Virus record (IMG/VR): IMGVR_UViG_3300042465_005589
Span: 1 to 64,000 of that record
DNA: 64,000 nucleotides
Reading direction: 5' to 3' (one strand)
The notes under the pieces are model-generated. The model saw nothing but the letters and a program-made list of their open reading frames with translations. It was not told the origin of the DNA and searched no databases. Both the position numbers and the translations under genes were made by a program. How positions within the stretch are numbered: position 1 is the stretch's first letter; every line of letters starts with the position of its first letter. Positions 13,434 through 58,905 of this stretch are shown in pieces.

Positions 13434-14654
13434 ATGAAAGAAAAAATAAATGTTTTAGTTCTCGCGTCAGATAAAACAGGCGTAGGGAAATTCAGGTCTT
13501 TAGACCCACATATTAAGTTACAAAATCTATATCCTGACGATTTCCACGTTGATATTGATTATGAACCAAGAATAAATGATATAAAGTATTGGGATAAATA
13601 CCAAATAATCCATGTGCATCGAAATATTGGTAGTCACTATGACCAAACACCATCAATTGTTAAATATTTAAAATCAATTGGTAAAGTGGTTGTTATTGAT
13701 ATTGATGATTATTGGTTACCAACTATTGACCATCCAATACATAGTATTATTGTTCAAAATAAAATTCACGAGAAAATTGTCGCAAACTTAAAAGAAGCTG
13801 ATTGGGTTACAACCACAACTGACATATTCGCCAATGAAATTCGTAAAATCAATAAAAATGTTTTGGTATTACCAAACGCTATTGACCCTAATGAACAACA
13901 ATTTAATCAACCAACACCACCGTCAGATAAAATCAGAATTGGTTGGTTAGGAGGGTCTTCACATTTACACGATTTAAATTTATTAGGTGATTTCGTTCAA
14001 AAGAATCAAGACATTAATGATAAATTACAATATGTAATTTGTGGGTTCGACACAAGAGGTTCTGTAACTGAAATTAATCCACAAACAGGTGAACAAAAGA
14101 AAAGAGATATTCTTCCACACGAAACTGTATGGGTTAATTATGAGGGTATCTTTACAAATAATTACAAAACATTAGATGAAAATTACATTAAATTCTTAAA
14201 GGAATTTAAAGAGAATGAATATATTTCAGATAAAGAATTACCATACGTTAGAGTTTGGACAAAACCGGTTAATTCTTACGCTATGAATTATTCAAAATTT
14301 GATATATCTTTGGCACCGATTAAAAATCACATCTTTAATAGAATGAAATCTCAATTAAAAGTAATTGAGGCAGGATTCTATAAGAAAGCATTAATTGCGT
14401 CTGAAATTGGACCATATACTATAGATTTAAAACATTGTTTAAAAAATGGGGTATTCACCGACGAAGGAAATGCGATTTTAATCCCTGAAAGTAGGAACCA
14501 TAGTGATTGGTCTAAATCAATTAAAAAATTAGTTCAGAATCCTGAAATGATAACTGAGTTAGGAGAGAGATTATATAATACCGTAAAAGACAAATATGAC
14601 CTTAATAAAGTAACGGTTACAAGAGCGGAGTTTTACAAAAGTTTAATCAAATAA
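13434..14654 (+). CDS. glycosyltransferase, GT-B fold (GT4-like)
   Basis: DIDDYW, IGWLGGSSH, DISLAP...FN..KS.LKVIEAG motifs. Confidence 0.8.
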   Translation: MKEKINVLVLASDKTGVGKFRSLDPHIKLQNLYPDDFHVDIDYEPRINDIKYWDKYQIIHVHRNIGSHYDQTPSIVKYLKSIGKVVVIDIDDYWLPTIDHPIHSIIVQNKIHEKIVANLKEADWVTTTTDIFANEIRKINKNVLVLPNAIDPNEQQFNQPTPPSDKIRIGWLGGSSHLHDLNLLGDFVQKNQDINDKLQYVICGFDTRGSVTEINPQTGEQKKRDILPHETVWVNYEGIFTNNYKTLDENYIKFLKEFKENEYISDKELPYVRVWTKPVNSYAMNYSKFDISLAPIKNHIFNRMKSQLKVIEAGFYKKALIASEIGPYTIDLKHCLKNGVFTDEGNAILIPESRNHSDWSKSIKKLVQNPEMITELGERLYNTVKDKYDLNKVTVTRAEFYKSLIK

Positions 14655-14664
14655 AAAACAAAAA

Positions 14665-15375
14665 ATGATAAAAATACCTTTAACTAAAATATTATTTTTA
14701 GATATAGAAACTGTTGGAATTGAAAAAGATTATGACACTTGTTTAGAAAAGAGACCTGAACTCGCTAAACAATTTGACAAATATTACGATTGGTTTTTAA
14801 AACGATTTCCTGAAGATAAGGAAATTGAAGTTAACCAAAAAAATACAGTGTTTGCAACAAGAACAGCTTTAGTTCCTGAATTTGCAAAAATTGTTTGTAT
14901 GAGTGTTGCGTTTGTAATGGATAATGGAGATATAAAAAAAACAACCTTTTCCGGAGACAACGAAAAAGAGGTATTAAAAGAATGTCAAAAATTATTAGAC
15001 CGTTGTGGTAAATTAGATTTTTTTCTATGTGGACATAATTTAAAAAACTTTGACATTCCAATGACAGCTAAAAGAATGATTATTAATGGATTATTACCCC
15101 CATCAATTCTACCTTCTTACGATACAAAGCCGTGGGAAATCAAAGCTATTGATACTAGAGAAATTTGGCAATATGGTGCTTATACAGCGATTGGGTCATT
15201 AGACTTGATGTGTACTTCAATGGAAGTTCCATCACCAAAAGAGGGTGAAGTTACCGGAGATAAAGTACACGACGCATATTGGAACAAAGATATGTTAGAA
15301 GAAATATCTGCATATTGTGAACGTGACGTATTAGTCTTAATTGACATAATAAAAAAATTAAAAGAATTAGAATAA
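14665..15375 (+). CDS. DEDD 3'-5' exonuclease (PolB-exonuclease-like)
   Basis: FLDIET, GHNLKNFDIP, YCERDV. Confidence 0.85.
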   Translation: MIKIPLTKILFLDIETVGIEKDYDTCLEKRPELAKQFDKYYDWFLKRFPEDKEIEVNQKNTVFATRTALVPEFAKIVCMSVAFVMDNGDIKKTTFSGDNEKEVLKECQKLLDRCGKLDFFLCGHNLKNFDIPMTAKRMIINGLLPPSILPSYDTKPWEIKAIDTREIWQYGAYTAIGSLDLMCTSMEVPSPKEGEVTGDKVHDAYWNKDMLEEISAYCERDVLVLIDIIKKLKELE

Positions 15376-16055
15376 TGTTTAACGAAGATTTAGATTTTTT
15401 AAAAAACAAAGCGGAAGAATTAAAAAAATTAGCGAATATTGATTTAGATGATTTAAGTTATGATGATATAATGAGTGAATTTGGTTTGGATTTAAAACAA
15501 CTTGAAGAAGATATGTTAAATTCAAAAACAAGATTACCATTAGGATTTGTAAAAATTCATCCCGACGCAATAACCCCGAAATATAATTATGATAGTGATT
15601 CAGGTTTTGACCTACATTCTGTTGAAGATGTTACCATAGAAGCTTTCGGTCGAGCGTTAGTTCCTAGCGGACTATCCTTTGATATTAAAGATGGATATGA
15701 GATTCAAGTTAGGACTAAAAGTGGTTTAGCCATTAATCAGGGTCTTATGGTTTTAAACTCACCTGGAACTGTGGATTGTTTTTCAGAAGATATGAAAATA
15801 CTAACAATTAAGGGTGAAAAAACGATAAATGAATTAAATCTTAATGATGTTATCTTTTCATTTAATGAAAAGACATTAGAAATTGAAAAAGATATTATTA
15901 CCAACATTTTTAACACGGAAGAACAGGAAATAATTGTTTTTGAAACTGACAATGGAATATTAGAGGTTACACCTAATAGTGAAGTTTATACTAAAAGAGG
16001 GTTATTGTTGGCTAAAGATGTGAAAGAAAATGATGAGATTATTGTTTTTTATTAA
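15375..16055 (+). CDS. dut: dUTPase N-terminal part fused to N-half of a split intein
   Basis: dUTPase motifs SGFDL and RTKSG, half of motif 3 (GTVD), then intein block A CFSEDMKILT; ends at TAA. Confidence 0.9.
   Translation: MFNEDLDFLKNKAEELKKLANIDLDDLSYDDIMSEFGLDLKQLEEDMLNSKTRLPLGFVKIHPDAITPKYNYDSDSGFDLHSVEDVTIEAFGRALVPSGLSFDIKDGYEIQVRTKSGLAINQGLMVLNSPGTVDCFSEDMKILTIKGEKTINELNLNDVIFSFNEKTLEIEKDIITNIFNTEEQEIIVFETDNGILEVTPNSEVYTKRGLLLAKDVKENDEIIVFY
15777..16052 (+). mobile_element. split intein N-fragment (92 aa)
   Basis: Cys1 (codon 135); Hint-like blocks; block B reads EVTPNSEVY; ends AKDVKENDEIIVFY. Confidence 0.85.
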
Positions 16056-16064
16056 CCTGTGTAA

Positions 16065-16071
16065 TATTTAT
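16065..16071 (+). promoter_or_regulatory. putative late promoter motif for the endonuclease and the IntC-dUTPase gene
   Basis: TATTTAT 20 nt upstream of ATG 16092. Confidence 0.5.
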
Positions 16072-16091
16072 CAATAAAGATAAAGGGTATA

Positions 16092-16976
16092 ATGGTAAAA
16101 TGTTTAATTTGTGGGGTAGAAAAAAAATGTTCAATTGTTGAACATTTAAAATTTGTACATCAATTAAAATCTGATGAGTATAAAAAAATGTTCTTTGGTT
16201 CAAAAGTTAAATCAGATGACGAACTATTAAAAATGTCGGATAGAGCCAAAAAAAATTGGAGTAGTCCTGAGTATAAAGAATCTCAAATTAAAATTAGAAA
16301 AATTACACATCAAGACCCAATTTTTAAAGAAAAGATGTCTGAAACTTTAAAGAAAAAACATAAAGAAAATCCGGAGTTATTCACAGGATTTACTCAATGG
16401 TCTAAAACTGAGAAATATAAAGAATGGGTTATATCAAAAGAACGAACAGATAAAATATCTAAAACTAGTAAAAAAAGATGGGAGAATGACGAATATCGAG
16501 AAAAAACCATCAATTCTATTAAGAAATCATTAAATGATGGAAGGTGTGATAAATCGTTAGAGTTTAGAGAAAAAATGTCAATAATTATTTCAAAATTATA
16601 TGCAAATGGTACAATATCTAACGAATCAAATAAATATAAAACAGGTAAATATAATTCAAAAACAAATGAGGTATTTTTATATTCCTCATCATATGAATTG
16701 GAATCTATGGTATTATTTGATGATTCCAACAATATAAAAAGTTGGACTAATAAACATGGAATTAGAATTAAATATTTTTATAATAATTTAAATAGAAATT
16801 ATGTTCCCGATTTTTTAGTTGAGTTTATAAATGGAGTTACTTATATTATTGAAATGAAAGGATGGAACACTGAAGAGGTTGATATTAAAGAATATTACAC
16901 AAAAAAAACATACCCTAACTATAAAATATTCTATAGTGTTAACGAATTAAAACAATTTATAAATGAAAACAACTAA
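16092..16976 (+). CDS. free-standing putative homing endonuclease (C2H2 finger, NUMOD-like basic repeats, TnsA-like PD-(D/E)XK domain)
   Basis: CLIC...H...H; repeated KMS/KIS..K..W....Y helices; YSSSYE...YVPDFLV...IIEMKG. Confidence 0.75.
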   Translation: MVKCLICGVEKKCSIVEHLKFVHQLKSDEYKKMFFGSKVKSDDELLKMSDRAKKNWSSPEYKESQIKIRKITHQDPIFKEKMSETLKKKHKENPELFTGFTQWSKTEKYKEWVISKERTDKISKTSKKRWENDEYREKTINSIKKSLNDGRCDKSLEFREKMSIIISKLYANGTISNESNKYKTGKYNSKTNEVFLYSSSYELESMVLFDDSNNIKSWTNKHGIRIKYFYNNLNRNYVPDFLVEFINGVTYIIEMKGWNTEEVDIKEYYTKKTYPNYKIFYSVNELKQFINENN

Positions 16977-17070
16977 AATACTTAAAATTTCAAAAACAAG
17001 AAAACAAACTTATGATATTACCGTTGAAAATAATCATAATTTTTTCTGTAACAATCATTTAATTCATAAT
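16963..17070 (+). mobile_element. split intein C-fragment (36 aa)
   Basis: TYDITVENNHNFF (block F), LIHN (block G), followed by Cys+1. Confidence 0.9.
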
Positions 17071-17268
17071 TGTGGTTATACCGGAGAAGTTAAAGGAATT
17101 ATATTTAACACCAATAATCATCCTGTAACAATAACTAAAGGAATGAAATTTGGTCAAGCGGTGTTGTGTCCCGTTGTAAATGGGGGTTGGGTTCATTTGG
17201 ACCAAAGAGACAAAGTTACAGATAAAGAAAGAGGTGATAATGGGTTTGGCTCAACAGGATTAATATGA
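16963..17268 (+). CDS. dut: C-half of split intein fused to dUTPase C-terminal part
   Basis: after HN: CGYTGE (rest of motif 3), KFGQ (motif 4), RGDNGFGSTG (motif 5). Confidence 0.9.
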   Translation: MKTTKILKISKTRKQTYDITVENNHNFFCNNHLIHNCGYTGEVKGIIFNTNNHPVTITKGMKFGQAVLCPVVNGGWVHLDQRDKVTDKERGDNGFGSTGLI

Positions 17269-18773
17269 TAACAGTAATATACTCAACACATAAAGATGAA
17301 CAATATAATAACAAATTTAAACAACATTTGTTACAAACCGTTGGTTTAAAAGACGTTCAAATTTTAGAATACAAAAACAATAATGAATTTAGTTTGGCTG
17401 AGATTTACAATAAAGGTATTTCTCAATCAATTTTTGATATTGTAATTTGTTGTCATAACGATATCAAATTAGAAAATGGTTGGGGAAAAAAATTATTAAA
17501 AGATTTTTCAAATAACCCTGATTATGGGATTATTGGAAAAGCCGGTTCTTGTTATTTTCCTGAATCAGGGGTGTACTGGGAACGTATGCAACAAACAATG
17601 GTGGGACAAGTTTATCACCATCCCGATGGTCAAAATAAATGGTTAAGTAAATATTCTTTAAAATTACCATATTTAATTCCAGTAGTAACTATTGATGGGT
17701 TATTTATATCATTTGATAAAACAAAAATTAATCATCAATTTGATGAAACAATTGGAAGATTCCATTTTTACGACCATTTATTCTGTATTCCTAATTATAT
17801 AGATGGTATTAAAATTGGTGTAACATCTTCTTTTGAAATTACACATCAGTCCGTTGGGAGACCGAATCAAGAATTTTGGGAAAGTAAAGATAAATTTATT
17901 GAAAAGTGGGGAAGTAATTTGCCATTAGATTTAAAACCTGAAAAAATTTACATTCCTGAAATAAAAGAAAAACCAATTAAGAATATTGGTAGAGTTGCGG
18001 TTATAATCCCAACCAAAGGAAATGTTGAAATGTTAAAAGAATGTGTTGATTCATTTTACAATTATTGTAATTCTGAGTTATTTGATATTTTTATTGCGGA
18101 CACCGGTTCTACGGATGATGAAAAAGAAATATTAAAAAACAATATAAAAAATTATAACAACATAAAACTAATTGAGTACGATTACTATAATTTTTCAAAA
18201 ATTAATAATGATGTTGTAAAAAATCACGTAACAAATAAACACGAATTTTTATTATTCTGTAATAATGATATTAAATTATTAAATAATGTTATTTATGGAA
18301 TGTTAAATATTTTTAAAACAACACCCAAAGTTGGTACCGTTGGGTGTCGACTTCATTTTGAAGATAATACTATTCAACACAACGGTGTTATTTTAGCTAT
18401 AAATTCAAATAATATTTTTAATATTGGTCATGAAAATTTTAGTTGTTACTATAATTATATAATAAATAAAACAGAGGTTATTGGAAATACTGCAGCACTG
18501 ATGATGATTAAAACAAATATATTTAAAGATAATGGTATGTTTAATGAGAATTATCTTGAGTGTTTTGAAGATGTAGAATTAAATTTTAAATGTGTAATAA
18601 GTGGATATAAAAATTATATGTGTGGTGATTTAGTTGGTTATCATTATGAAAGTAAAACTAGAAATAACGATAACAATAAATTAACAAAACAAAACGAAGA
18701 TTACTTAAAAAGATTATTACCATTTTTAAATAAAAATTATCTTAAACTATTAAAACTAATTAAAAAAAATTAA
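17265..18773 (+). CDS. two-domain GT2-family glycosyltransferase
   Basis: CHNDI and CNNDI motifs, VIIPTK, ADTGSTD, FEDVEL. Confidence 0.85.
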   Translation: MITVIYSTHKDEQYNNKFKQHLLQTVGLKDVQILEYKNNNEFSLAEIYNKGISQSIFDIVICCHNDIKLENGWGKKLLKDFSNNPDYGIIGKAGSCYFPESGVYWERMQQTMVGQVYHHPDGQNKWLSKYSLKLPYLIPVVTIDGLFISFDKTKINHQFDETIGRFHFYDHLFCIPNYIDGIKIGVTSSFEITHQSVGRPNQEFWESKDKFIEKWGSNLPLDLKPEKIYIPEIKEKPIKNIGRVAVIIPTKGNVEMLKECVDSFYNYCNSELFDIFIADTGSTDDEKEILKNNIKNYNNIKLIEYDYYNFSKINNDVVKNHVTNKHEFLLFCNNDIKLLNNVIYGMLNIFKTTPKVGTVGCRLHFEDNTIQHNGVILAINSNNIFNIGHENFSCYYNYIINKTEVIGNTAALMMIKTNIFKDNGMFNENYLECFEDVELNFKCVISGYKNYMCGDLVGYHYESKTRNNDNNKLTKQNEDYLKRLLPFLNKNYLKLLKLIKKN

Positions 18774-19333
18774 TGATAACGTTTTTAGCAACAGCATATA
18801 AAGAGACAACAGATTCTTATCAATTTATAAGTTCTTTAATATTACAACAAAACCCAAATTGGGAGTGTATAATTCATTGTGATGAAAAAAATGAATATCT
18901 TGAAAAGTGTGTTAATTTTTTTAATTCGGATAAAATAAAAGTGATATATAATGAAACACCAACGTCTTATTGGGGACATTTTAACCGAAAAAATACATTA
19001 GAATTAGTGAGTACTGAGTTTGTAATTCAAACGTCTATTCAGGACTATTATACACCTAACACCGTAAGTGAATTATTGTCAAATTTGACTGATTGTGATA
19101 TGGTTATGTATAATTGTATCCATAACCATTTTAATTATAATGTGTTAGACTCTACACCTATTAGATGTAGAATTGATTGGGGTTCATTTGTCATAAGAAC
19201 AGACATAGCCAAAAAAGTGGGGATTAATCATCCTGAATCACCATTTTGCGATGGTATTTTTGTTGAAGAATGTTTAAAACATCCAAATATAAGAACGAAA
19301 AAAATAAATAAAATATTAACTGTACATAATTAA
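18773..19333 (+). CDS. GT2-like glycosyltransferase (short)
   Basis: LILQQNPNWECIIHCD N-terminal GT-A pattern. Confidence 0.6.
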   Translation: MITFLATAYKETTDSYQFISSLILQQNPNWECIIHCDEKNEYLEKCVNFFNSDKIKVIYNETPTSYWGHFNRKNTLELVSTEFVIQTSIQDYYTPNTVSELLSNLTDCDMVMYNCIHNHFNYNVLDSTPIRCRIDWGSFVIRTDIAKKVGINHPESPFCDGIFVEECLKHPNIRTKKINKILTVHN

Positions 19334-20323
19334 ATGAAGATATCGATTATTGGAACAGGGTGGGTTGGATGTCATTTGTCTAATGTGTTAAAAAACGAAC
19401 ACGATGTCACGCTATATGAAAAAAATGACAAAATATTTAATGGCACTTCTTACTATAATCAAAATAGATTACATTATGGTTATCATTATGCGAGAAACTA
19501 CGAAACCAGAAATTTGTGTAAAACAACTTTTTATAGGTTTATAAACGACTATGGGTTTTGCGTGACCGATATTGATAAAAACTTTTATTGCGTACCTAAA
19601 AAATTATCTTTAATTGATTTAAACACATATTTAAAAATTTTTGATGAGTATCCGTCTGAATTAACTTCCCATAATTTTAGTAATACTGAAGGATGTATTT
19701 TAACAAATGAAAAACATATTAATTTTAAAAAAGTTAAAAATTATTTTCAAAAAGAATTAGATGGGTTAATAAAATATGAAACAATAGATAATGTAAAATT
19801 AGAACAACTATCTAAAAACTCGGATTTAGTTATTGATGCGACAAATAATTTTATGGGATTAATAAATACTGATTTTTTTTATGAGTTAACCATAACATTA
19901 ATTTATGATAAAATTAAATCAACTAATTTCGATTCTGTGACATTTGTTGATGGTGAACTATTTTCTATCTACCCTTATAAAGATAATAAGTTTACATTAA
20001 CCGATGTTAAATTAACACCATTAAAAAAGTTTTCATCAGTTAATGAAATCGATGAATATAAAAAATTAATAAATGATGAATTTATTTTAAATAAAATTAA
20101 AGAATTTGAAAATCGAGTTATGACATTTATGCCGGAATTCAACGAATACTTTAAATATGACTCTTATTTTTTATCAATAAAAAGTAAAGTAAATGATGAG
20201 TCGGATAGTCGATATCCAGTAATAAAACAAACAAACAATATAATTTCATGTTTTACCGGAAAAATACAAGGAATTTATATTATTGAGGATTATATTTTAA
20301 ACATAATTAATAATGACAAATGA
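19334..20323 (+). CDS. FAD-dependent oxidoreductase
   Basis: IIGTGWVG Rossmann motif, GTSYYNQNRLHYGYHY. Confidence 0.8.
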   Translation: MKISIIGTGWVGCHLSNVLKNEHDVTLYEKNDKIFNGTSYYNQNRLHYGYHYARNYETRNLCKTTFYRFINDYGFCVTDIDKNFYCVPKKLSLIDLNTYLKIFDEYPSELTSHNFSNTEGCILTNEKHINFKKVKNYFQKELDGLIKYETIDNVKLEQLSKNSDLVIDATNNFMGLINTDFFYELTITLIYDKIKSTNFDSVTFVDGELFSIYPYKDNKFTLTDVKLTPLKKFSSVNEIDEYKKLINDEFILNKIKEFENRVMTFMPEFNEYFKYDSYFLSIKSKVNDESDSRYPVIKQTNNIISCFTGKIQGIYIIEDYILNIINNDK

Positions 20324-21359
20324 AGAATTATCGTTTCTATTTAACAAATACTTGAATAGAAATTTTACAAACCATGAACTAATTGTTCATGGTAAAAAAA
20401 CAGTAAGTTTTTTAGAAAATGAAATATTAAATTGTAACGAATATTTAAAATTACCCACAAGAAATACTAACATAAATGATTTGAAAGTTGCCATTTTATT
20501 AAGTGGTCATATCAGAAAAAACTCAATATTAAAAGGGATAAATCAATTTTGTAATAATGAAAATTTTCATGTTTTTATACATACATGGGATAATATAGGA
20601 TTGAAAGGTAGTGAAACCTTATTAAACGATTTATCCGCCGAAACTTCCGTGATTTCTGAAATAAACAAATTCACTAATATGAAAAACCATGAAATAGATA
20701 ATAATAAATATTGGATTGAATCTCAAGAAATTAAAGATAACTATTTTAATTTTTCATCTCCAGAAATTTTTATTAAATCTCAATTATATTCTATTAATAA
20801 ATCATATAAATTAATGGAACAATATTCAAAAGAAAATAATATTGAATATGATGTGGTTTTAAAAATAAGATTTGATTGTGATATGACAGAATTTAATTTA
20901 ACAGATAAAATAATCTCAGACATAAAAACTCATGATATTATTTTTACCCCTAATATTGATAATCAACATACTCACATGGACTATGGTACATCTTGTTGGG
21001 CATGTGACAGTTTATATTATAAACATAATAGAAAAATGGTTCATATTTTTGACCACACAAATGTTATATGTGATTTATTTGCGTATGGGAGTAAAGATTC
21101 AATGAAACAATATTGTGATTTATATAATAATTATGATGAACTAAACAAATCTTTTTTTGATAAAAATCTAAAGCAATTTAAAAGAGTCCCTAAAAATATT
21201 GTTCATGAAGGTGGTAATTATAACTTAAAAGGTCATGAAGGTCACGTAGATTCATTATATTATTACTATTGCTCATATCCGGAAAGATTACTACAATTTC
21301 AATTAAAAGATTATATGTTAGTTCAATCAAAAGAAATTAAATTAAACTTAGTTCGATGA
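20313..21359 (+). CDS. putative glycan-modifying protein
   Basis: VAILLSGHIR...VFIHTW...YDVVLKIRFD...DLFAYG...YPE pattern seen in polysaccharide loci. Confidence 0.5.
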   Translation: MTNEELSFLFNKYLNRNFTNHELIVHGKKTVSFLENEILNCNEYLKLPTRNTNINDLKVAILLSGHIRKNSILKGINQFCNNENFHVFIHTWDNIGLKGSETLLNDLSAETSVISEINKFTNMKNHEIDNNKYWIESQEIKDNYFNFSSPEIFIKSQLYSINKSYKLMEQYSKENNIEYDVVLKIRFDCDMTEFNLTDKIISDIKTHDIIFTPNIDNQHTHMDYGTSCWACDSLYYKHNRKMVHIFDHTNVICDLFAYGSKDSMKQYCDLYNNYDELNKSFFDKNLKQFKRVPKNIVHEGGNYNLKGHEGHVDSLYYYYCSYPERLLQFQLKDYMLVQSKEIKLNLVR

Positions 21360-22117
21360 AAATATTAATAGGAAACACCGGTTTAGTAGGGCAAACTTTA
21401 AAAGAAAGTATAAATTTTGAATTTGAATATAATTCAAAATCAATTCATAATTATTTACCACCTGATGGATGTGACTTGTATTTATCTTGTTTACCTTCAA
21501 CAAAATGGTTAATTAATAAAGATACGAAGTCAGATATTGAAACTGTGGTAGACATTATTAAATTAATAGGCGATGTTAAATATAAAAATGTATATGTAAT
21601 ATCTACGATTGATGTATATGGGAATTCACCTGTAGGTGTTGACGAAGATTTTGAACCAATATTCAAAGATTTTTCTTATGGGTCGAATAGATATCTTTTT
21701 GAAAAAATGGTTGTAAAACACTTAAACTATGAGAATGTAAAGATTTTTAGATTACCAGCTTTATTTAGTAAAAATATTAAAAAAAACATATTATACGATT
21801 TATTGAATAATAATAACATTCATATGATTAATAAAAATTCATCATTCCAATGGTATAATTTAAATGATTTGGTGAGTGATATAAATTTGTATGGTAAAAA
21901 TTACTCTAACGAAATAGTTTTTAATTTATTTACGGAACCATTGGAAAGTGAAGAAATCATTAATTTATTCCCGTCTCATAAAGAAAAAGTTATACATTCC
22001 GAAATTAAAATACAGTACGATTATACGACCAAATATTCGTCAACCGGATACATAAAACCTAAAGAGGTAATATTAAATGAAATTAAAAAATTGGTAAACG
22101 AAATTGCTCTTAAATAA
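21356..22117 (+). CDS. NAD(P)-dependent epimerase/dehydratase-like protein
   Basis: LIGNTGLVG, ISTIDVY, YGSNR, RLPALF. Confidence 0.75.
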   Translation: MKILIGNTGLVGQTLKESINFEFEYNSKSIHNYLPPDGCDLYLSCLPSTKWLINKDTKSDIETVVDIIKLIGDVKYKNVYVISTIDVYGNSPVGVDEDFEPIFKDFSYGSNRYLFEKMVVKHLNYENVKIFRLPALFSKNIKKNILYDLLNNNNIHMINKNSSFQWYNLNDLVSDINLYGKNYSNEIVFNLFTEPLESEEIINLFPSHKEKVIHSEIKIQYDYTTKYSSTGYIKPKEVILNEIKKLVNEIALK

Positions 22118-22119
22118 TA

Positions 22120-23220
22120 TTATAAAGTCATTCTATTTGAATGATTAGATTTTATTTTTTCCATTGAGATTTCAATTGGTAAACACTTGTCACTAAAATA
22201 ATTTATTTGGTTAAACAATGTTTCATGGTTTTTAATCTTGTTAACATAATTATTTGTATCTAATAGTTCTTCAGTTAATATTTCATCAACAATTTTTGAG
22301 TATTCTATATTGGAAATACCTTCCTTATTTGGTAAAACTAAACAACTTTCTTTTAAATCAATATCTTTAGTGAATATTTTTTGGTATAATAACAATTCTT
22401 CTTCGGATAGTATTGGTACTATATTATAAGCAAAACACTGATAAAAAGATATTCTAGTTGGGGTATCCCCTCTTAACACAAACAAATATTTTGTTTTCAT
22501 TAATTCCTCTTCTATATTTAACATACTACCAATATAAACTTCTGTTTTTAATTGTAGTATAAAACTTCTAATTCTATTAAGTAATGGTCTAGACTCTGAA
22601 TGTAAAGAACCAATAAATGTTAGGTCATATTTTTTTTCACAACTTATAATTTTTTTTATAGAAGGAAGTGAAAATAAACTATTACTATTCAACACATATG
22701 GAATCGTAATTATTCTGTCGTATGTACCCATTTTAAAAGTTGTGGTAGTATTAAAAAAAGATACCTCATCCTCATAGCTTAAAATAAAAATATCCTTGTC
22801 GATTGATTCAAAAGAAGTTTCAAATAAAACATAACTATATAAAATAAAATGCGGAATTTTTAAATTTGATTCTACGTTATTTTTAATAAAATTATCCCAA
22901 TAAAATTTAATAAAATTTTCTTTATACCCAACACCAAACGTAGGTGGTTGAACTTTTGGGATTAAATCAGAATACTTGTCATAACTTTTTAAATGAATAA
23001 AAAGTTTGTTATGATTACTAGGGGTTATAGACCCATAAATCAATCTAATAAAGTCTATCGGTATGAAAGCAATATCAGATTCATTGATATCATCAACCAC
23101 TTCATATTTTAATTTTAGTTTATCCAAAAATATATTGTATAAATCCATTTCAGGTGGTAAGGACTCAAAAAATGACATAATTTTTTCTAATTCTTTGATA
23201 TTATAAATAAAAATCTTCAT
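22120..23220 (-). CDS. exostosin (GT47)-like glycosyltransferase
   Basis: start MKIFIYN (23220); ADIAFIP-like, IPY, TFIGS, LFVLRGDTPTRISFYQ...VPI. Confidence 0.7.
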   Translation of the reverse strand: MKIFIYNIKELEKIMSFFESLPPEMDLYNIFLDKLKLKYEVVDDINESDIAFIPIDFIRLIYGSITPSNHNKLFIHLKSYDKYSDLIPKVQPPTFGVGYKENFIKFYWDNFIKNNVESNLKIPHFILYSYVLFETSFESIDKDIFILSYEDEVSFFNTTTTFKMGTYDRIITIPYVLNSNSLFSLPSIKKIISCEKKYDLTFIGSLHSESRPLLNRIRSFILQLKTEVYIGSMLNIEEELMKTKYLFVLRGDTPTRISFYQCFAYNIVPILSEEELLLYQKIFTKDIDLKESCLVLPNKEGISNIEYSKIVDEILTEELLDTNNYVNKIKNHETLFNQINYFSDKCLPIEISMEKIKSNHSNRMTL

Positions 23221-23241
23221 ACTTATTAAATATAAGTCTAT

Positions 23242-24252
23242 ATGTCTAATAATAAATGTTTTCACATATTAAATATTAATCCCGAATTTAATTCAGACTT
23301 ATTACCAATACACATAAATGATAATGAAATAATTAATAATCATTTTATTAAATTTGACGATTATAAATTTTTACGGTCACAATATTCTTTAGAGATAGTG
23401 TTACATAATATGTTTAGAGAACACAAAAATTTAATAAATAATTATGAAAATTCTGACATCGTATTCATCCCTATTTATTTATTTTGCACCGCATGGTCAA
23501 AGAAATATTTTTATGATGTTAATCAAATAATTAATAAAATAAATTTAATCTTACCGTTAATTAATAACTGTGTTAATGATGGTAAAAAAGTTATTATTAC
23601 TTATTCAGATGTTATGTGGGAGGATAATAGATGTTTTTTAAATTACTTTAATTTCCATGAAAACATTTATGTTATTTGTTATGAAGATGTGATAAGTACA
23701 AACAATCAAATCCCGGTACCATATTGTACTCATATTAAAAAAAACCCAAAAGATTATATTATACCTCAAAACATTAACAAAAAACACTTAATAAGTTATG
23801 CAGGTAGATATAGAAAAGAAATTGATTACTTTAATAATATTCAGGTATTAAATACAAATACAGTAATCGATGATAAATGGATTAGCATTAATAATGTGGA
23901 CACATACAATGAAATTGATGAGCTTTATTTAAATAGTCATTTTTCGTTACAACCACATGGGGATAAACAATCGAGAAAAGGGTTCTATCATAGTTTATTA
24001 CTTGGATGTATACCCGTAATATTTGATGACAATTATGGTATATATGAAAAAGTGTTAAATGGCATTGTTAATATTGAAGATATTTCTGTAATATTAAACA
24101 AACATGAAAACAATTTTGAAGACGTATTGAATAAAGAATTAATAAACATTAATTCAAAGATTGAAAATATTAATAAAATAAAACATTTATTATTGTACGA
24201 TGAGAATGATTTATCAATTGTTGATTTTATTTTAAATAAAATTAAATTTTAA
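23242..24252 (+). CDS. exostosin (GT47)-like glycosyltransferase
   Basis: SDIVFIP, VPY, SHFSLQPHGDKQSRKGFYHSLLLGCIPV. Confidence 0.8.
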   Translation: MSNNKCFHILNINPEFNSDLLPIHINDNEIINNHFIKFDDYKFLRSQYSLEIVLHNMFREHKNLINNYENSDIVFIPIYLFCTAWSKKYFYDVNQIINKINLILPLINNCVNDGKKVIITYSDVMWEDNRCFLNYFNFHENIYVICYEDVISTNNQIPVPYCTHIKKNPKDYIIPQNINKKHLISYAGRYRKEIDYFNNIQVLNTNTVIDDKWISINNVDTYNEIDELYLNSHFSLQPHGDKQSRKGFYHSLLLGCIPVIFDDNYGIYEKVLNGIVNIEDISVILNKHENNFEDVLNKELININSKIENINKIKHLLLYDENDLSIVDFILNKIKF

Positions 24253-24274
24253 AATATACAAATATATTAAAAAT

Positions 24275-25033
24275 ATGAAATTATCATTAAGTAACTTAGC
24301 GTGGGATATCTCCGATAACGACCAAATCTTAACTATATTAAAGACTAAAAATATTCATAATATTGAAGGTGTTCTAACTAAAATTAATGAATGGGATAAA
24401 TTATCTAACGATGTTTTAATAGAGTATAAAAAAAAGTTAGACTCTTACAATATTAAAATGGAGTCAATTCAGTCAATATTTTATGATGTTAAATGTGATG
24501 GAATTAAAGATACGAAAATAGTTTATAAACATATTGACAGACTAATTGAAATATGTAAAATATTAGGGGTTAAGGTTATGGTTTTTGGGTCTCCTACCAT
24601 TAGAAATGGAATCGTTGATGATTCGTTATCTAAAATATTTAAAAGGATTGATAATTCACTTAACAATACAGGTATTGCTCTAACTATTGAACCTAACTCT
24701 AAAGTTTATGGGGGGAATTATTTTTATAATATAGAAGAAATTGTTGATTTTATTAAAAATAATAAATTTATTAATATTAAAACAATGATTGATACCCATA
24801 ACTTAAAATTAGAAGGTTACGACCCAATTATTGAATTAAGTAAGTATTATGACTATATTAATCATATACATATTTCGGAAATAAAATTGACACCAATTAT
24901 AAATCCTGATATACATATAAATTTCTCAAATGAACTTAAAAAATTAGGATATAATCAAATAATCACATATGAGGTTTTAAAATGTGATAATATTGAATCT
25001 GAAATAAAAAAATTTGTTGAGATTTACAACTAA
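24275..25033 (+). CDS. sugar phosphate isomerase/epimerase (xylose isomerase-like TIM barrel)
   Basis: MKLSLSNLAW, VFGSP, IEPN, DTHN, HIHISE, YE. Confidence 0.8.
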   Translation: MKLSLSNLAWDISDNDQILTILKTKNIHNIEGVLTKINEWDKLSNDVLIEYKKKLDSYNIKMESIQSIFYDVKCDGIKDTKIVYKHIDRLIEICKILGVKVMVFGSPTIRNGIVDDSLSKIFKRIDNSLNNTGIALTIEPNSKVYGGNYFYNIEEIVDFIKNNKFINIKTMIDTHNLKLEGYDPIIELSKYYDYINHIHISEIKLTPIINPDIHINFSNELKKLGYNQIITYEVLKCDNIESEIKKFVEIYN

Positions 25034-39255: not shown

Positions 39256-41112
39256 TTATCTCAATTCTCTTAAATCGAATGTTCTAACACCATCTACAGT
39301 AATTCTTCCGTAAAATCTGTTGTTCACCATTTTTTTCGCGTAACGAGTCATTATACCTTTAATCGGTGTAAAGTTGAATGGGTTGTACATTGTTGGTGTT
39401 AATTGTAATGGTACATACGGTGCGTAGATGTATCCTGTGTCTAACAATGATGTTCCTTTGTGTCCAATTAACACTTGGTTAGCTGGGAAGTAAGGGTCAC
39501 GGTAAACTTGGTAACGTCCTGCTAATGTTCCAACTCTTTCAATACCCATGTTATATTGGTCTTGTTCAGGAGAAGCATTAGATACGTGGAAGTACTCTAA
39601 ATCATCAAAGATAGCAGAAACCTCAGAAGATACAACAATCCAGTTTGCTCCACCTCTTAAAGTAGATTTGTGGATTTGTGCAGACAATTGGTTAATTGCT
39701 GTAATTAATGTTTGGTTCCAATCTTTTTGAGTGTAAGAAGTTACTTGAGAAATTCTTCTCCAACCATTGTAATCCCATCTCAAGTTCCATGCAGCACCTT
39801 TACGTAAATCTCTTAAGATTTCACGGTCAATTTCTGCCGCAACTTGCTCAGATAATAAAGCTGTTAATTCAGCTTCAGCATCGATGTTGTGGAAAGCTGC
39901 AACGTCTTGAGCTAACTCAGGAGACCATTGTGCTCTTAATTTTCTTTCTGTAACTGATACAGTAACTGAATCTAAATCGAAAGAAACCTCACCGATTTTA
40001 TCTTCAAATTCTAATTCTTCATAACGTCTGAAAACAGCTTTAAATGAAGTTGTTGCTAATGCTTCAGAAATAGTTGTACCTGTGTAACCATCTAACGATG
40101 AAGAATCACAATCAGCACATACTGGACAAGATAAATCAACTTCTAACCAAATACAACCATCAACGTCACATACATTTTTGAATGAACCACCGTTACCAGT
40201 AGATGCAAATGTTGTTTGAGTTGTGTTACCATATTTCACAATACCTCTACCATAGATTTGAGTTACAACTCTAAATAATAAAGCTCCTGTAGATACAGCA
40301 CATGGTGAACTAGCGTCAACTGTTAAACCAGCTCCTGTATAGATAATTAAATCAGATAAGAATGATTCAGTATCCATTTCGTTACCATCAGGTCCGATTA
40401 ATTTTCCTGCACCTGTGTCAGCAAAACCACACATTTTAATGATAACTTTTCTTGTGTTACCTGAAGCAATTACTGCTGCTCCATCAGTTGTTCCTGAAAT
40501 AACTGCATCAACTAAAACTCCACCTGTCCATTTTTGGATAGTTGTTGTTGCTGTGATAGCTGACCAACGACCTTTAGAATAATCAAATAATCCTGGTGGG
40601 TCTAAACTTGGTTCGTTACCTTCATAGAATAAATCATAAAGATTTTTTTCATATACTGGGTTGTTTGAGCCTGAACCTGCTGTGTAACCTTCACTTGGAG
40701 AACCTGGATAATTTCCTGGAGACCCGATTGGTGCGTAGTGCTCACCTGAATACTGACCGTCAATACCGTCTTTGTATCCTTGAATTTTTGGTACAAAATA
40801 GAATAATTTACCGATTGGTAAGTTCATTGCTTGTACAGAAACGATATCATTCGCTAATAATTTAGAGAATACTCTTCTTACGATAGGAAATACAACAGTT
40901 TCAAATGAACCTGAAGACCCGTCAGAAGTTGCTTCGTTTATTAAGAAAGACGCTTGGTTCTCATATAATTGAGCTACGTTTTCTCTTAAGTGACCTTTAA
41001 GACCTTCAAGAAATCCTAATTTGTCCCATTTGTTGATTGTGTCTTCTTTAATAACTTTAAGGTGTTTTAACCCGATGTTACCAACTAGACCTGATTCTAA
41101 TAATGCTCCCAT
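39256..41112 (-). CDS. major capsid protein (T4 gp23-like)
   Basis: VSVQAMNLPIGKLFY, RKLRAQWSPELAQD..AFHNIDAEAEL, EIDREI, YAPYVPL, FTPIKGIMTRY. Confidence 0.96.
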   Translation of the reverse strand: MGALLESGLVGNIGLKHLKVIKEDTINKWDKLGFLEGLKGHLRENVAQLYENQASFLINEATSDGSSGSFETVVFPIVRRVFSKLLANDIVSVQAMNLPIGKLFYFVPKIQGYKDGIDGQYSGEHYAPIGSPGNYPGSPSEGYTAGSGSNNPVYEKNLYDLFYEGNEPSLDPPGLFDYSKGRWSAITATTTIQKWTGGVLVDAVISGTTDGAAVIASGNTRKVIIKMCGFADTGAGKLIGPDGNEMDTESFLSDLIIYTGAGLTVDASSPCAVSTGALLFRVVTQIYGRGIVKYGNTTQTTFASTGNGGSFKNVCDVDGCIWLEVDLSCPVCADCDSSSLDGYTGTTISEALATTSFKAVFRRYEELEFEDKIGEVSFDLDSVTVSVTERKLRAQWSPELAQDVAAFHNIDAEAELTALLSEQVAAEIDREILRDLRKGAAWNLRWDYNGWRRISQVTSYTQKDWNQTLITAINQLSAQIHKSTLRGGANWIVVSSEVSAIFDDLEYFHVSNASPEQDQYNMGIERVGTLAGRYQVYRDPYFPANQVLIGHKGTSLLDTGYIYAPYVPLQLTPTMYNPFNFTPIKGIMTRYAKKMVNNRFYGRITVDGVRTFDLRELR

Positions 41113-56856: not shown

Positions 56857-58905
56857 ATGACAGAACCTATGGATGGTGGAAGTAACGGTGGAAATAATAA
56901 ATCAGTTAAGACTGATTCATCAACACCTGTATTAGACAATTTTAGTAGAGACCTTATTAAATTAGCCGAACAAGGAAAACTTGACCCGGTAATTGGTAGA
57001 GAAAGGGAAATCACTAGAATTGCTCAGATTCTTTCACGTAGAAAGAAAAATAACCCAATCATTATTGGTGAACCTGGTTGTGGTAAAACAGCAATCGTTG
57101 AAGGTCTTGCCATTATGATTTATAATGGGGAATGTCCAAGAAACTTAATGGACAAACGTATCGTATCATTAGATATGACATCAATTGTTGCCGGAACCAA
57201 ATATCGTGGACAATTTGAGGAAAGAATGAAAGTTATCATTGAAGAACTTCAAAACGAACCTAACATTATCGTATTCATTGACGAAATCCACACAATAGTT
57301 GGTGCAGGAAATTCATCAGGTTCAATGGATGCGTCTAACATCTTTAAACCAGCACTTGCTCGTGGTGAGATTCAATGTGTTGGAGCAACAACCTTAGACG
57401 AATATCGAAAAAACTTTGAGAAAGACGGAGCGTTAGAAAGACGTTTTCAAAAAGTTGTTGTGGATTCAGCAACCAAAGAAGAAACTTTGGAAATCCTTAA
57501 AAACGTAAAAGACAAATACGAGAACTTCCATAAGGTAACTTATACGGATGAAGTATTGTCTGTATGTGTTGATTTGGCTGACCGTTATATCACTGACAGA
57601 GAATTCCCGGATAAAGGTTTTGATATCATTGATGAAGTGGGAGCAAGAAGTCAAGTTGATATTAAGATGCCGGATTCAATTGAGAAATTGAAACAACAAG
57701 CGTCTGATATCAAACAAGAAAAGATTGATGTTGTAAAACAACAACGATATGAAGAAGCTGCGAACTTACGTGATAAAGAAAAACGTATCTTAACCAAACT
57801 TGAGACTGAAAAGAAAAAGTTTGAAGAAGAACTTCTTACTCACAAAAAAGAAATCACATTAGATTTAGTTTATGAGGTTGTGTCTAACATGACCAAAATT
57901 CCGGTAACCAAATTAAATGCTGATGAGACCAAACTATTATCTGAGATGGAGGCAAACCTATCTGATAAAGTTATTGGACAATCTGAAGCCGTTTCAAAGA
58001 TTGCTAAGTCAATCCGTAGAAACAGAATTGGTATTAAGGACCCGAACAAACCAATCGGTTCATTTATCTTCTTAGGTTCAACAGGTGTTGGTAAAACATA
58101 CTTGGCGAAACAACTAGCAAAACAAATGTTTGGTAGTGAAGATAATATGATTCGTGTGGATATGTCTGAATACCAAGAAAAACACACCATCTCAAGATTA
58201 ATTGGAGCACCTCCGGGATACGTTGGATACGATGAAGGGGGACAATTAACCGAACAAGTGAAAAACAAACCTTATTCTGTAATTCTATTTGATGAGATTG
58301 AGAAAGCTAACAAAGATATCTTCTCAACACTTCTTCAAGTATTAGACGACGGTCACCTTACCGATGGTATGGGGAGAAAGATTAACTTCAAAAATTGTGT
58401 CATCATTATGACCTCTAATGTTGGAGCTAAAAAATTACAAGATTTTGGTTCAGGAGTTGGTTTTAAAACCGGAACAAGCACTTATGCTGATGAAGAATAC
58501 AAACGTGATGTTCTTAAAAAAGAACTTAAGAAATTCTTCACACCGGAATTCTTAAACAGAATTGATGAGGTTGTTATCTTTAACACCCTAATTAAAGATG
58601 ATGTTAAGAAAATTGTGAAATTGGAATTAGACAAACTATCTAAAAGATTAGTTGGTTTGAAATACGATATTACATTTGATGATACCATTTTAGACCTAAT
58701 CTCTGAAGTTGGATTTGATGAGACCTACGGGGCTAGACCAATCAAAAGAGCAATCCAAGATAAAATTGAGGATTTTGTGTCCGAAGAAATTATCAAAGGA
58801 AATATGGTGGAGGGTGTTCCATACACCCTTATATCCGTAGAGAAAGAAGTGGTAGTTAAACCGGAAGTTGTTAAAAAGACAAGAAAGAAAAAAGAGGACA
58901 TATAG
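56857..58905 (+). CDS. clpC: ClpC-like AAA+ unfoldase lacking the N-terminal domain
   Basis: two AAA modules ([13 protein letters not shown]; [15 protein letters not shown]), UVR-like middle domain ([11 protein letters not shown]), ClpP-docking loop GVGF. Confidence 0.88.

Follow-up and report, generated by a model that had tools for sequence, protein, structure and literature searches.

We analysed the first 64 kb of the 318,164-bp IMG/VR contig IMGVR_UViG_3300042465_005589 from lake water (positions 1 to 64,000, hereafter the window), and in particular its dut locus, at which the gene for dUTPase is broken into two pieces by an intein and a nuclease gene. The phage is AT-rich and T4-like, with gp23, gp20 and large terminase genes in the window. 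Three consecutive genes make up the locus (Table 1): gene 1 joins the front of dUTPase (the N-extein) to the N-terminal half of an intein (IntN), gene 3 joins the C-terminal intein half (IntC) to the rest of dUTPase (the C-extein), and gene 2 between them encodes a putative homing endonuclease. An initial annotation, made from the sequence alone, had claimed that dut is cut after GTVD within motif 3, that gene 1 comprises dUTPase residues 1-134 plus a 92-aa IntN with Cys1, that gene 3 comprises a basic 36-aa IntC ending in HN plus 65 aa of dUTPase from Cys+1, and that a free-standing endonuclease lies between the halves. Both the sequence and its open reading frames (ORFs) agree with this description to the base, the intervening gene being a 294-aa nuclease ORF, and a recount showed the hand-counted charges to be exact. 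The net charge is -11 for IntN and +4 for IntC, against family medians of -12 and +4. The motif-3 Asp that precedes the cut is, in dUTPases generally, the catalytic base.

The two halves lie in different frames. The TAA that terminates gene 1 (16053-16055) is followed by a second in-frame TAA at 16062-16064. The ATG of gene 3 falls within the final 14 nt of gene 2, so that genes 2 and 3 overlap by 14 nt. Both dUTPase pieces exceed the cut-off of 22 for Pfam family PF00692 (28.9 bits for the N-extein and 35.2 bits for the C-extein), the N-extein also matches phrog_135 (E 5.7e-25), and all five dUTPase motifs are kept in the exteins of split alleles. Public annotations of the pieces read 'dUTPase' and 'hypothetical protein'.

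Table 1. Features of the fractured dut locus and free-standing relatives of its nuclease gene.
Feature	Position	Strand	Description
Gene 1	15375..16055	+	226 aa; reads ...NSPGTVD then Cys135; from ORF list and sequence
dut N-extein, dUTPase residues 1-134	15375..15776	+	acidic N-terminal extension of ~55 aa, motifs 1 and 2, first half of motif 3 to the catalytic Asp (GTVD)
IntN, 92 aa from Cys1 plus TAA stop	15777..16055	+	20 D/E vs 9 K/R; block B = T-P-N-S
Leader of nuclease gene	16056..16091	+	second in-frame TAA, candidate stem-loop, purine-rich stretch, then start codon
Gene 2, putative homing endonuclease, 294 aa	16092..16976	+	own start; frame of gene 1
Predicted PD-(D/E)xK nuclease domain	16638-16973	+	about residues 183-294; Glu202, Pro239-Asp240, Glu254-x-Lys256
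Gene 3	16963..17268	+	101 aa; ...HLIHN then CGYTGE; +1 frame
IntC, 36 aa	16963..17070	+	6 K/R vs 2 D/E; block F (YDITV..NNHNFF), block G (..HN)
dut C-extein, 65 aa plus stop	17071..17268	+	Cys+1 (TGT, 17071-17073), GYTGE, motif 4, motif 5 (RGDNGFGSTG)
Whole inserted element: IntN, leader, nuclease gene and IntC	15777..17070	+	1,294 bp; BLASTN against intact-dut contigs
Free-standing nuclease homologue loci	L084:402-1759; L086:114-1607; L088:1-1068		beside intact dut

Related phages, which the initial annotation had proposed to search, carry both intact and fractured dut alleles at the same locus. A protein search with gene 1 recovered intact dUTPases of 199 aa with 87-93% identity across the N-extein. 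Comparison of the window with intact 199-aa alleles gave 93-96% identity for the N-extein and, from residue 2 onward, 92-95% for the C-extein. One of these alleles (P0076, 199 aa) maps onto the N-extein with its residues 1-135, and its length is that predicted for the spliced product (134 + 65 aa), as had been claimed. The intact allele matches solved trimeric dUTPases with E 2.6e-35 and an identical NSPGTVDN motif. Solved dUTPases, to which the matches begin at residue 54-57, lack the acidic and probably helical extension of some 55 aa at the N-terminus (15375-15540), which is conserved alike in intact and split alleles of the phage group. On one 97-kb contig with an intact allele (L001), a gene for a 236-aa exonuclease, the 199-aa dut and a gene for a 502-aa glycosyltransferase follow one another, with neighbours as in the window.

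Comparison with five related intact-dut contigs, whose flanks are 81-94% identical to those of the window in nucleotide sequence, delimits the insertion. The BLASTN alignments of all five end at 15776 and resume at 17073 (four contigs) or 17074 (the fifth), so the inserted element corresponds to 15777-17070. At the junction, GTVD-N-GYTGE in the intact alleles becomes GTVD|C...HN|C-GYTGE in the window, and the sole further change relative to these contigs is in the +1 codon, AAT (Asn) in the intact form and TGT (Cys) in the window. More generally, split alleles always have Cys as residue +1 and intact alleles always Asn or Ser, so that a spliced enzyme would carry a one-residue scar. Two proteins considered as candidate contiguous dut inteins (P0347 and P0270) proved to be tandem or fused dUTPases without an intein. 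Megablast of the region gave no match among GenBank phages, and tblastn of the nuclease and IntN against these phages recovered nothing but distantly related endonucleases of Bacillus phages and inteins of helicases or terminases, the element being found in none. Peptide patterns derived from gene 1, which catch close relatives only, found no relative in 185,579 bacterial and archaeal species genomes.

The split intein belongs to a large family with a fixed insertion site. IntN is present in 105 of the 120 best clusters at 90% identity and in 63 of the 150 best representatives at 50% identity; 163 of 168 IntN-bearing proteins terminate at the end of IntN, and almost every junction has the form G-x-(V/I)-D|C at the identical site in motif 3. 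Without exception, the order N-extein-IntN, nuclease, IntC-C-extein recurs at the 11 distinct split loci, of which one is the window, nine (the truncated L041 among them) come from IMG/VR and one, L085, comes from a Logan assembly. The residues expected of a splicing intein are strictly conserved: Cys1 occurs in 165 of 165 IntN sequences, and Asp18 and His25 of block F, His35 and Asn36 of block G, and Cys+1 each occur in 104 of 106 C-half homologues. The best PDB sequence match of IntC is the gp41-1 intein (6qaz, E 5.2e-6) and those of IntN are DnaB inteins (E 0.01). IntN also aligns without gaps to a contiguous intein in P0271 (BLASTP E 2e-17, 37% identity), a 316-aa non-dUTPase protein that holds a complete mini-intein with TDEH and, a few residues on, the start of a second related intein. 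The dUTPase at L085:509-2186, an ordinary short one that lacks the N-terminal extension, is interrupted at GVID|CFSE by a 52%-identical IntN, and the dut split-intein family therefore reaches well past the phage group of the window.

The region between IntN and the nuclease gene is also conserved. Across 10 distinct split loci, about 30 nt of the roughly 36-nt leader hardly vary, and a candidate stem-loop (UAUUUAUC ... GAUAAA; RNA fold z-score -2.1) adjoins the purine-rich stretch and the start codon, making a structured leader plausible. The overlap of nuclease stop and gene 3 start is likewise conserved among split loci, and no stem-loop was seen at it. Sigma-70-like promoters and terminators were no commoner in 14600-17600 than in shuffled sequences, and the leader showed no recognisable late-promoter TATAAATA box.

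The predicted nuclease begins with a Ros/MucR-like C2H2 zinc finger (residues 4-23, 16101-16160), which is followed by helical repeats and a C-terminal PD-(D/E)xK domain. Nine columns are invariant in the family, four in the finger (C4, C7, H18, H23) and five in the putative catalytic core (E202, P239, D240, E254, K256). The AlphaFold model has a mean predicted local distance difference test score (pLDDT) of 86.6, and its best Foldseek match in the PDB is TnsA of Tn7 (1f1z; E 1.1e-4, probability 1.0). Pfam gave weak matches to TnsA-like_N, DUF1064, Phage_endo_I and ROS_MUCR; over 19 members of the family, TnsA-like_N matches 15, below its cut-off, and Ros/MucR matches 12 weakly. Among viral models in BFVD, the matches are phage proteins annotated 'endonuclease', 'endonuclease I', 'NUMOD3' or zinc finger, the best including proteins of Bacillus phages Moonbeam and SP-15. 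The endonucleases of previously described fractured genes are GIY-YIG and Vsr-like enzymes, the latter with an Asp/His/Asp site without Lys (Dassa et al. 2009, PMC2677866). We rejected a Vsr-like identity, since no Vsr match appeared in Pfam (19 members), in the PDB profile search or among the top 50 structural matches, and the ExK lysine is invariant in place of the Asp/His/Asp site. Sequence and model together thus mark the protein as a predicted zinc-finger enzyme with a TnsA/EndoI-like PD-(D/E)xK domain, neither GIY-YIG nor Vsr-like.

This nuclease family is narrow: almost all of its 79 clusters share 49-100% identity and have lengths near 294 aa. The four distant homologues (30-33% identity in local and 32-39% in global alignment) all adjoin dut. 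Three of them (L084, L086/L087 and L088) are free-standing genes located some 50 nt downstream of a dut that is intact or complete-ended and has no intein, and the fourth, 30-32% identical to the nuclease of the window, lies at the same site inside the split dut of L085. Since every member read sits beside or inside dut, this exclusive association offers indirect support for recognition of dut DNA by the nuclease. The free-standing homologues behind intact dut could represent the 'before' state of the fractured gene.

All parts of the locus are under purifying selection. The ratio of nonsynonymous to synonymous substitution rates (dN/dS) in the three closest, least saturated pairs was 0.08-0.15 for IntN and 0.11-0.15 for the nuclease. 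Between the window and the nearest intact alleles it was 0.008-0.043 for the N-extein and 0.08-0.13 for the C-extein, and for exteins among split alleles it was 0.08-0.29, values for more distant pairs being rough because the synonymous rate (dS) is near saturation. Since dN/dS is low in every part, the host enzyme, the intein halves and the nuclease are all being maintained.

The element and its host gene have different histories. In a maximum likelihood tree of the exteins, from which the +1 column was removed, the split state requires six changes, no fewer than three of them being forced by branches with good support. Five intact alleles share a supported clade with the window, and the split L016 is sister to the intact L079 (support 100/98). 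In addition, the element is more conserved than the gene that carries it. For example, L011 and L033 are 58% identical in their exteins, 87% in IntN and 86% in the nuclease, and L003 and the window are 54% identical in the N-extein, 98% in IntN and 95% in the nuclease. Element dS in the three closest pairs (0.56-0.73) is about half that of the exteins (1.1-2.0), and between the window and L033 nucleotide identity is 68% in the upstream flank and 82% in the element. The scatter on the extein tree and the greater conservation of the element together argue for horizontal spread by homing. Losses may also contribute to the scattered distribution, and the tree does not separate them from spread by homing.

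These data suggest that dut of this roughly 318-kb T4-like freshwater phage is very probably a 'fractured gene' with a functional split intein; both trans-splicing and homing are strongly implied by the conservation patterns. According to this model, a mini-intein that contains, where endonucleases usually lie, a homing-endonuclease gene translated on its own would have invaded dut directly after the motif-3 Asp. Because the nuclease gene is independently translated within the intein, the intein would exist as two polypeptides. The three genes would be expressed from one transcript within a long run of genes on the same strand, the leader hairpin would moderate translation of the nuclease, and gene 3 would be translated by coupling to the overlapping 3' end of the nuclease gene. 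The acidic IntN and basic IntC would then associate and trans-splice, joining Asp134 to Cys+1 in a 199-aa dUTPase that would differ from the intact alleles only by the replacement of Asn/Ser with Cys at +1. The N-S acyl shift would proceed without a block-B His, by way of some compensating residue. In phages co-infecting the same cell, the PD-(D/E)xK nuclease would cut intein-free dut of relatives near the motif-3 codons, and repair would copy the whole element, including the Cys+1 codon.

Several observations weigh against this model. The best 150 representatives of the 1.84 billion proteins searched included no contiguous (unsplit) dut intein, so the assumed ancestor is missing, and no RNA run holding the stretch was present among the runs listed. 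The flanking extein DNA has no clear co-conversion tract beyond the +1 codon, the near-saturation of dS noted above makes the ratios of the more distant pairs rough, and covariation in the leader hairpin amounts to one compensatory pair (L037). Two split alleles look damaged: L012:524-2246 has in-frame deletions in the nuclease and C-extein, with loss of motif 4, and the C-extein at L011:3349-3615 stops short of motif 5; decay of the copies or errors of assembly may explain both. An intein profile search, suggested by the initial annotation as a check on both halves, recognised IntC (TIGR01443, gene 3 residues 16-37, 16.3 bits, above the cut-off of 15.6) and fell short for IntN, where TIGR01445 matched at the expected place (gene 1 residues 135-206) with 21.8 bits, just below the cut-off of 24.5. 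For the N-terminal splicing region, PF14890 scored 23.7 bits against a cut-off of 35.8 and PF07591 18.1 bits against 27.7.

The remaining observation on this side, which the initial annotation had not made, is the absence of the block-B His from nearly the whole family. In the alignment with P0271, block B of IntN (T-P-N-S) is set against T-D-E-H and T-G-E-H. Over the 165 IntN sequences, the position of the His is occupied by Ser in 91, Thr in 45, Lys in 24, Gln in 3 and His in 2, one of the latter being P0271 itself; Ser, Thr or Lys thus account for 160 of 165, and the block-B Thr is kept in 139. The block-B His is normally the main catalyst of the first splicing step. It is described as essential for many inteins, those without it being a very small subset, the orthologues of Tko CDC21-1 (PMC6333167). 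Inteins without this residue that still splice are nevertheless documented (PMC6333167). Like the CDC21-1 orthologues, the dut inteins replace the block-B His and keep the remaining splice residues, 24 of 165 having Lys at this position. The CDC21-1 orthologues, however, are contiguous and archaeal, whereas the dut family consists of naturally split phage inteins with mostly Ser or Thr there, and residue -1 of the dut intein is the small Asp, not a bulky one. Since all other splice residues are strictly conserved, splicing presumably still occurs, and either a compensating residue exists or the first splicing step is slow.

Three other explanations of the locus were weighed. An assembly or sequencing error, an alternative genetic code or an RNA intron might create an apparent split, and the metagenomic nature of the contig and the occurrence of stop recoding in some large phages speak for such an origin. 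Nevertheless, contigs from four runs of four studies, starting at 15300, 15343 or 15350 and reaching 17331 or 17400, span the region at depths of 13-80 with 0 differences, 0 gaps and no alternative joint; the stretch is held by 20 DNA runs, and an identical gene 1 product occurs on 38 contigs. The initial annotation had argued that two in-frame stops and a frame change are more than a single sequencing error could produce, and in keeping with that argument the four independent assemblies are identical, with the same split layout in each and in none the one continuous ORF that it named as a possible outcome. Stop-codon recoding cannot fuse the pieces, because the gene 1 stop is TAA, TAG or TGA depending on the allele and gene 3 is out of frame, and ORFs are long throughout the window under the standard code. 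RNA-level splicing, which the initial annotation had also named, found no support: an Rfam scan of 15300-17400 (E up to 1) returned no intron or other RNA family but one chance microRNA match, and group I and group II introns were rejected for want of a covariance-model match in that interval. Moreover, the intervening ORF encodes a conserved 294-aa protein under purifying selection. An artefactual, recoded or RNA-spliced origin is thus close to refuted and is the least probable of the three.

The other two explanations accept the split as real and deny it either splicing or function. Complementary charges would suffice for the intein halves to dock non-covalently and hold the dUTPase fragments together, the block-B His is missing throughout the family, and there is a precedent in the endonuclease-split NrdA of phage Aeh1, which reassembles without an intein (PMC3045599). 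Docking, however, needs neither Cys1 nor the terminal His-Asn nor Cys+1, which are kept in 165 of 165, 104 of 106 and 104 of 106 sequences, the last in place of Asn/Ser. Furthermore, a 128-aa domain left in motif 3 would, to judge from the match to solved dUTPases, occupy the active-site region of a compact trimer, and active inteins without a block-B His are known (PMC6333167). We consider docking without splicing improbable. It is more improbable still that the fractured dut is dead, the pieces persisting as endonuclease carriers after a selfish element destroyed a dispensable dUTPase. The damaged-looking alleles L012 and L011 would fit such decay, yet the exteins of split alleles keep five motifs with dN/dS of 0.008-0.13 against intact and 0.08-0.29 among split alleles, and the split form persists in lineages whose exteins have diverged to 55-77% identity. 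No second dut, further intein halves or nuclease copies occur within the 64-kb window, a search that covered 64 kb of the roughly 318-kb genome. We therefore retain the fractured gene with a trans-splicing intein and a homing nuclease as the preferred explanation.

Fractured genes in which split inteins flank a free-standing endonuclease were described from Global Ocean Sampling (GOS) metagenomes at gp41, NrdA, NrdJ, IMPDH, DnaE, terminase and ligase loci (Dassa et al. 2009, PMC2677866), and the layout of these precedents, invoked by the initial annotation, matches that of dut. The likeness extends to the order of N-extein-IntN, endonuclease and IntC-C-extein, to a conserved leader with a possible hairpin and an endonuclease 3' end that overlaps the downstream half, and to a phage or metagenome origin, a host enzyme of nucleotide metabolism and a site within a catalytic motif. 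The Vsr-like homing endonucleases of that study also resemble the dut nuclease in being free-standing proteins of about 300 aa with a C-terminal restriction-enzyme-like domain inside split inteins. The dut element differs in its dUTPase host, its other type of nuclease and its lack of a block-B His. The dut split is accordingly a further example of this class of fractured genes, not a new class; the host enzyme, the nuclease family and an intein without the block-B His are what is new relative to those published. dUTPase is not among the host proteins of that study (0 mentions in PMC2677866), and full-text literature searches, which included recent split-intein surveys, found no dUTPase split intein, consistent with the earlier statement that no described one was known.

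The dut intein can be compared with individual known systems. Its size (92 + 36 = 128 aa) is that of the 128-aa fused chain of the gp41-1 split intein (6qaz, 6riz), with which it also shares a split at the endonuclease insertion point, an acidic N half and a basic C half. The two differ in that IntN is only remotely similar, the host gene is another, block B has Ser for His, and the context of Cys+1 and Asp-1 is different. A self-excising intein, whose excision was shown in E. coli, occurs in the dCTP deaminase of cyanophage vB_AphaS-CL131 (PMC6293099). Its host, like dut, is a phage nucleotide-metabolism gene of the dUTPase/dCTP-deaminase fold family. The CL131 intein is, however, contiguous, with an internal endonuclease domain, and lies after the motif-2 Arg (..STYAR|CFTGD.. 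..VKN|CGI..), not in motif 3; no sequence relation between it and the dut intein was detectable. The nuclease shares the E...PD...ExK core of TnsA (Tn7), T7 endonuclease I and phage 'zinc finger, NUMOD3, endonuclease I' proteins. None of the TnsA or endonuclease I-type proteins is known as an intein-associated homing endonuclease, whereas the dut nuclease is always beside or inside dut.

Other parts of the window show features unrelated to the intein. Positions 1-2460 have about 50% G+C in a genome of about 29% G+C and consist of degenerate 9-nt periodic repeats (GTTCCTGAA, GTACCTGAA...). Read on the minus strand, they would yield collagen-like Gly-x-y (Ser-Gly-Thr) triplets; the ORF concerned, possibly that of a fibre protein, extends past the end of the contig. 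The major capsid protein (39256-41112, minus strand) has 618 aa, with its best Pfam Gp23 stretch at residues 346-603; tblastn against other T4-like capsid genes aligned two pieces, about 55% of the query, leaving about 280-340 aa, mainly N-terminal, unmatched. A 682-aa double AAA+ chaperone of ClpB/Hsp104 type (AAA_2, AAA_lid_9, ClpB_D2-small) is encoded at 56857-58905 on the plus strand. Relative to the window, L001 has an extra 151-aa cytidylyltransferase-like gene between a 406-aa gene and the exonuclease gene (at 14655-14665 of the window), and the sugar-modification genes downstream of the 502-aa glycosyltransferase differ (17265-25000). The very low-G+C (0.23-0.25) glycosyltransferase block of the window looks like a variable island.

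Taken further, and only tentatively, at somewhat less than even confidence, the dut element could be the first large natural split-intein family that splices without a block-B His, with Ser, Thr or Lys at that position or some other residue compensating, driven by a previously unrecognised, dut-dedicated lineage of PD-(D/E)xK homing endonucleases and preserving both the 'before' and 'after' states of gene fracture. With its cut beside the catalytic Asp, dUTPase joins the enzymes that tolerate a split intein, in keeping with the rule that inteins occupy catalytic motifs of nucleotide-metabolism and replication proteins. The family of at least about 60 clusters at 50% identity constitutes a natural diversity of small (92 + 36 aa) Cys1/Cys+1 split inteins for orthogonal ligation tools, and its lack of a block-B His is a natural experiment in another catalysis of the first acyl shift. 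Finally, since the nuclease family includes free-standing genes next to intact dut as well as genes nested in the split intein, it allows the gene-breaking model of Dassa et al. to be tested directly.

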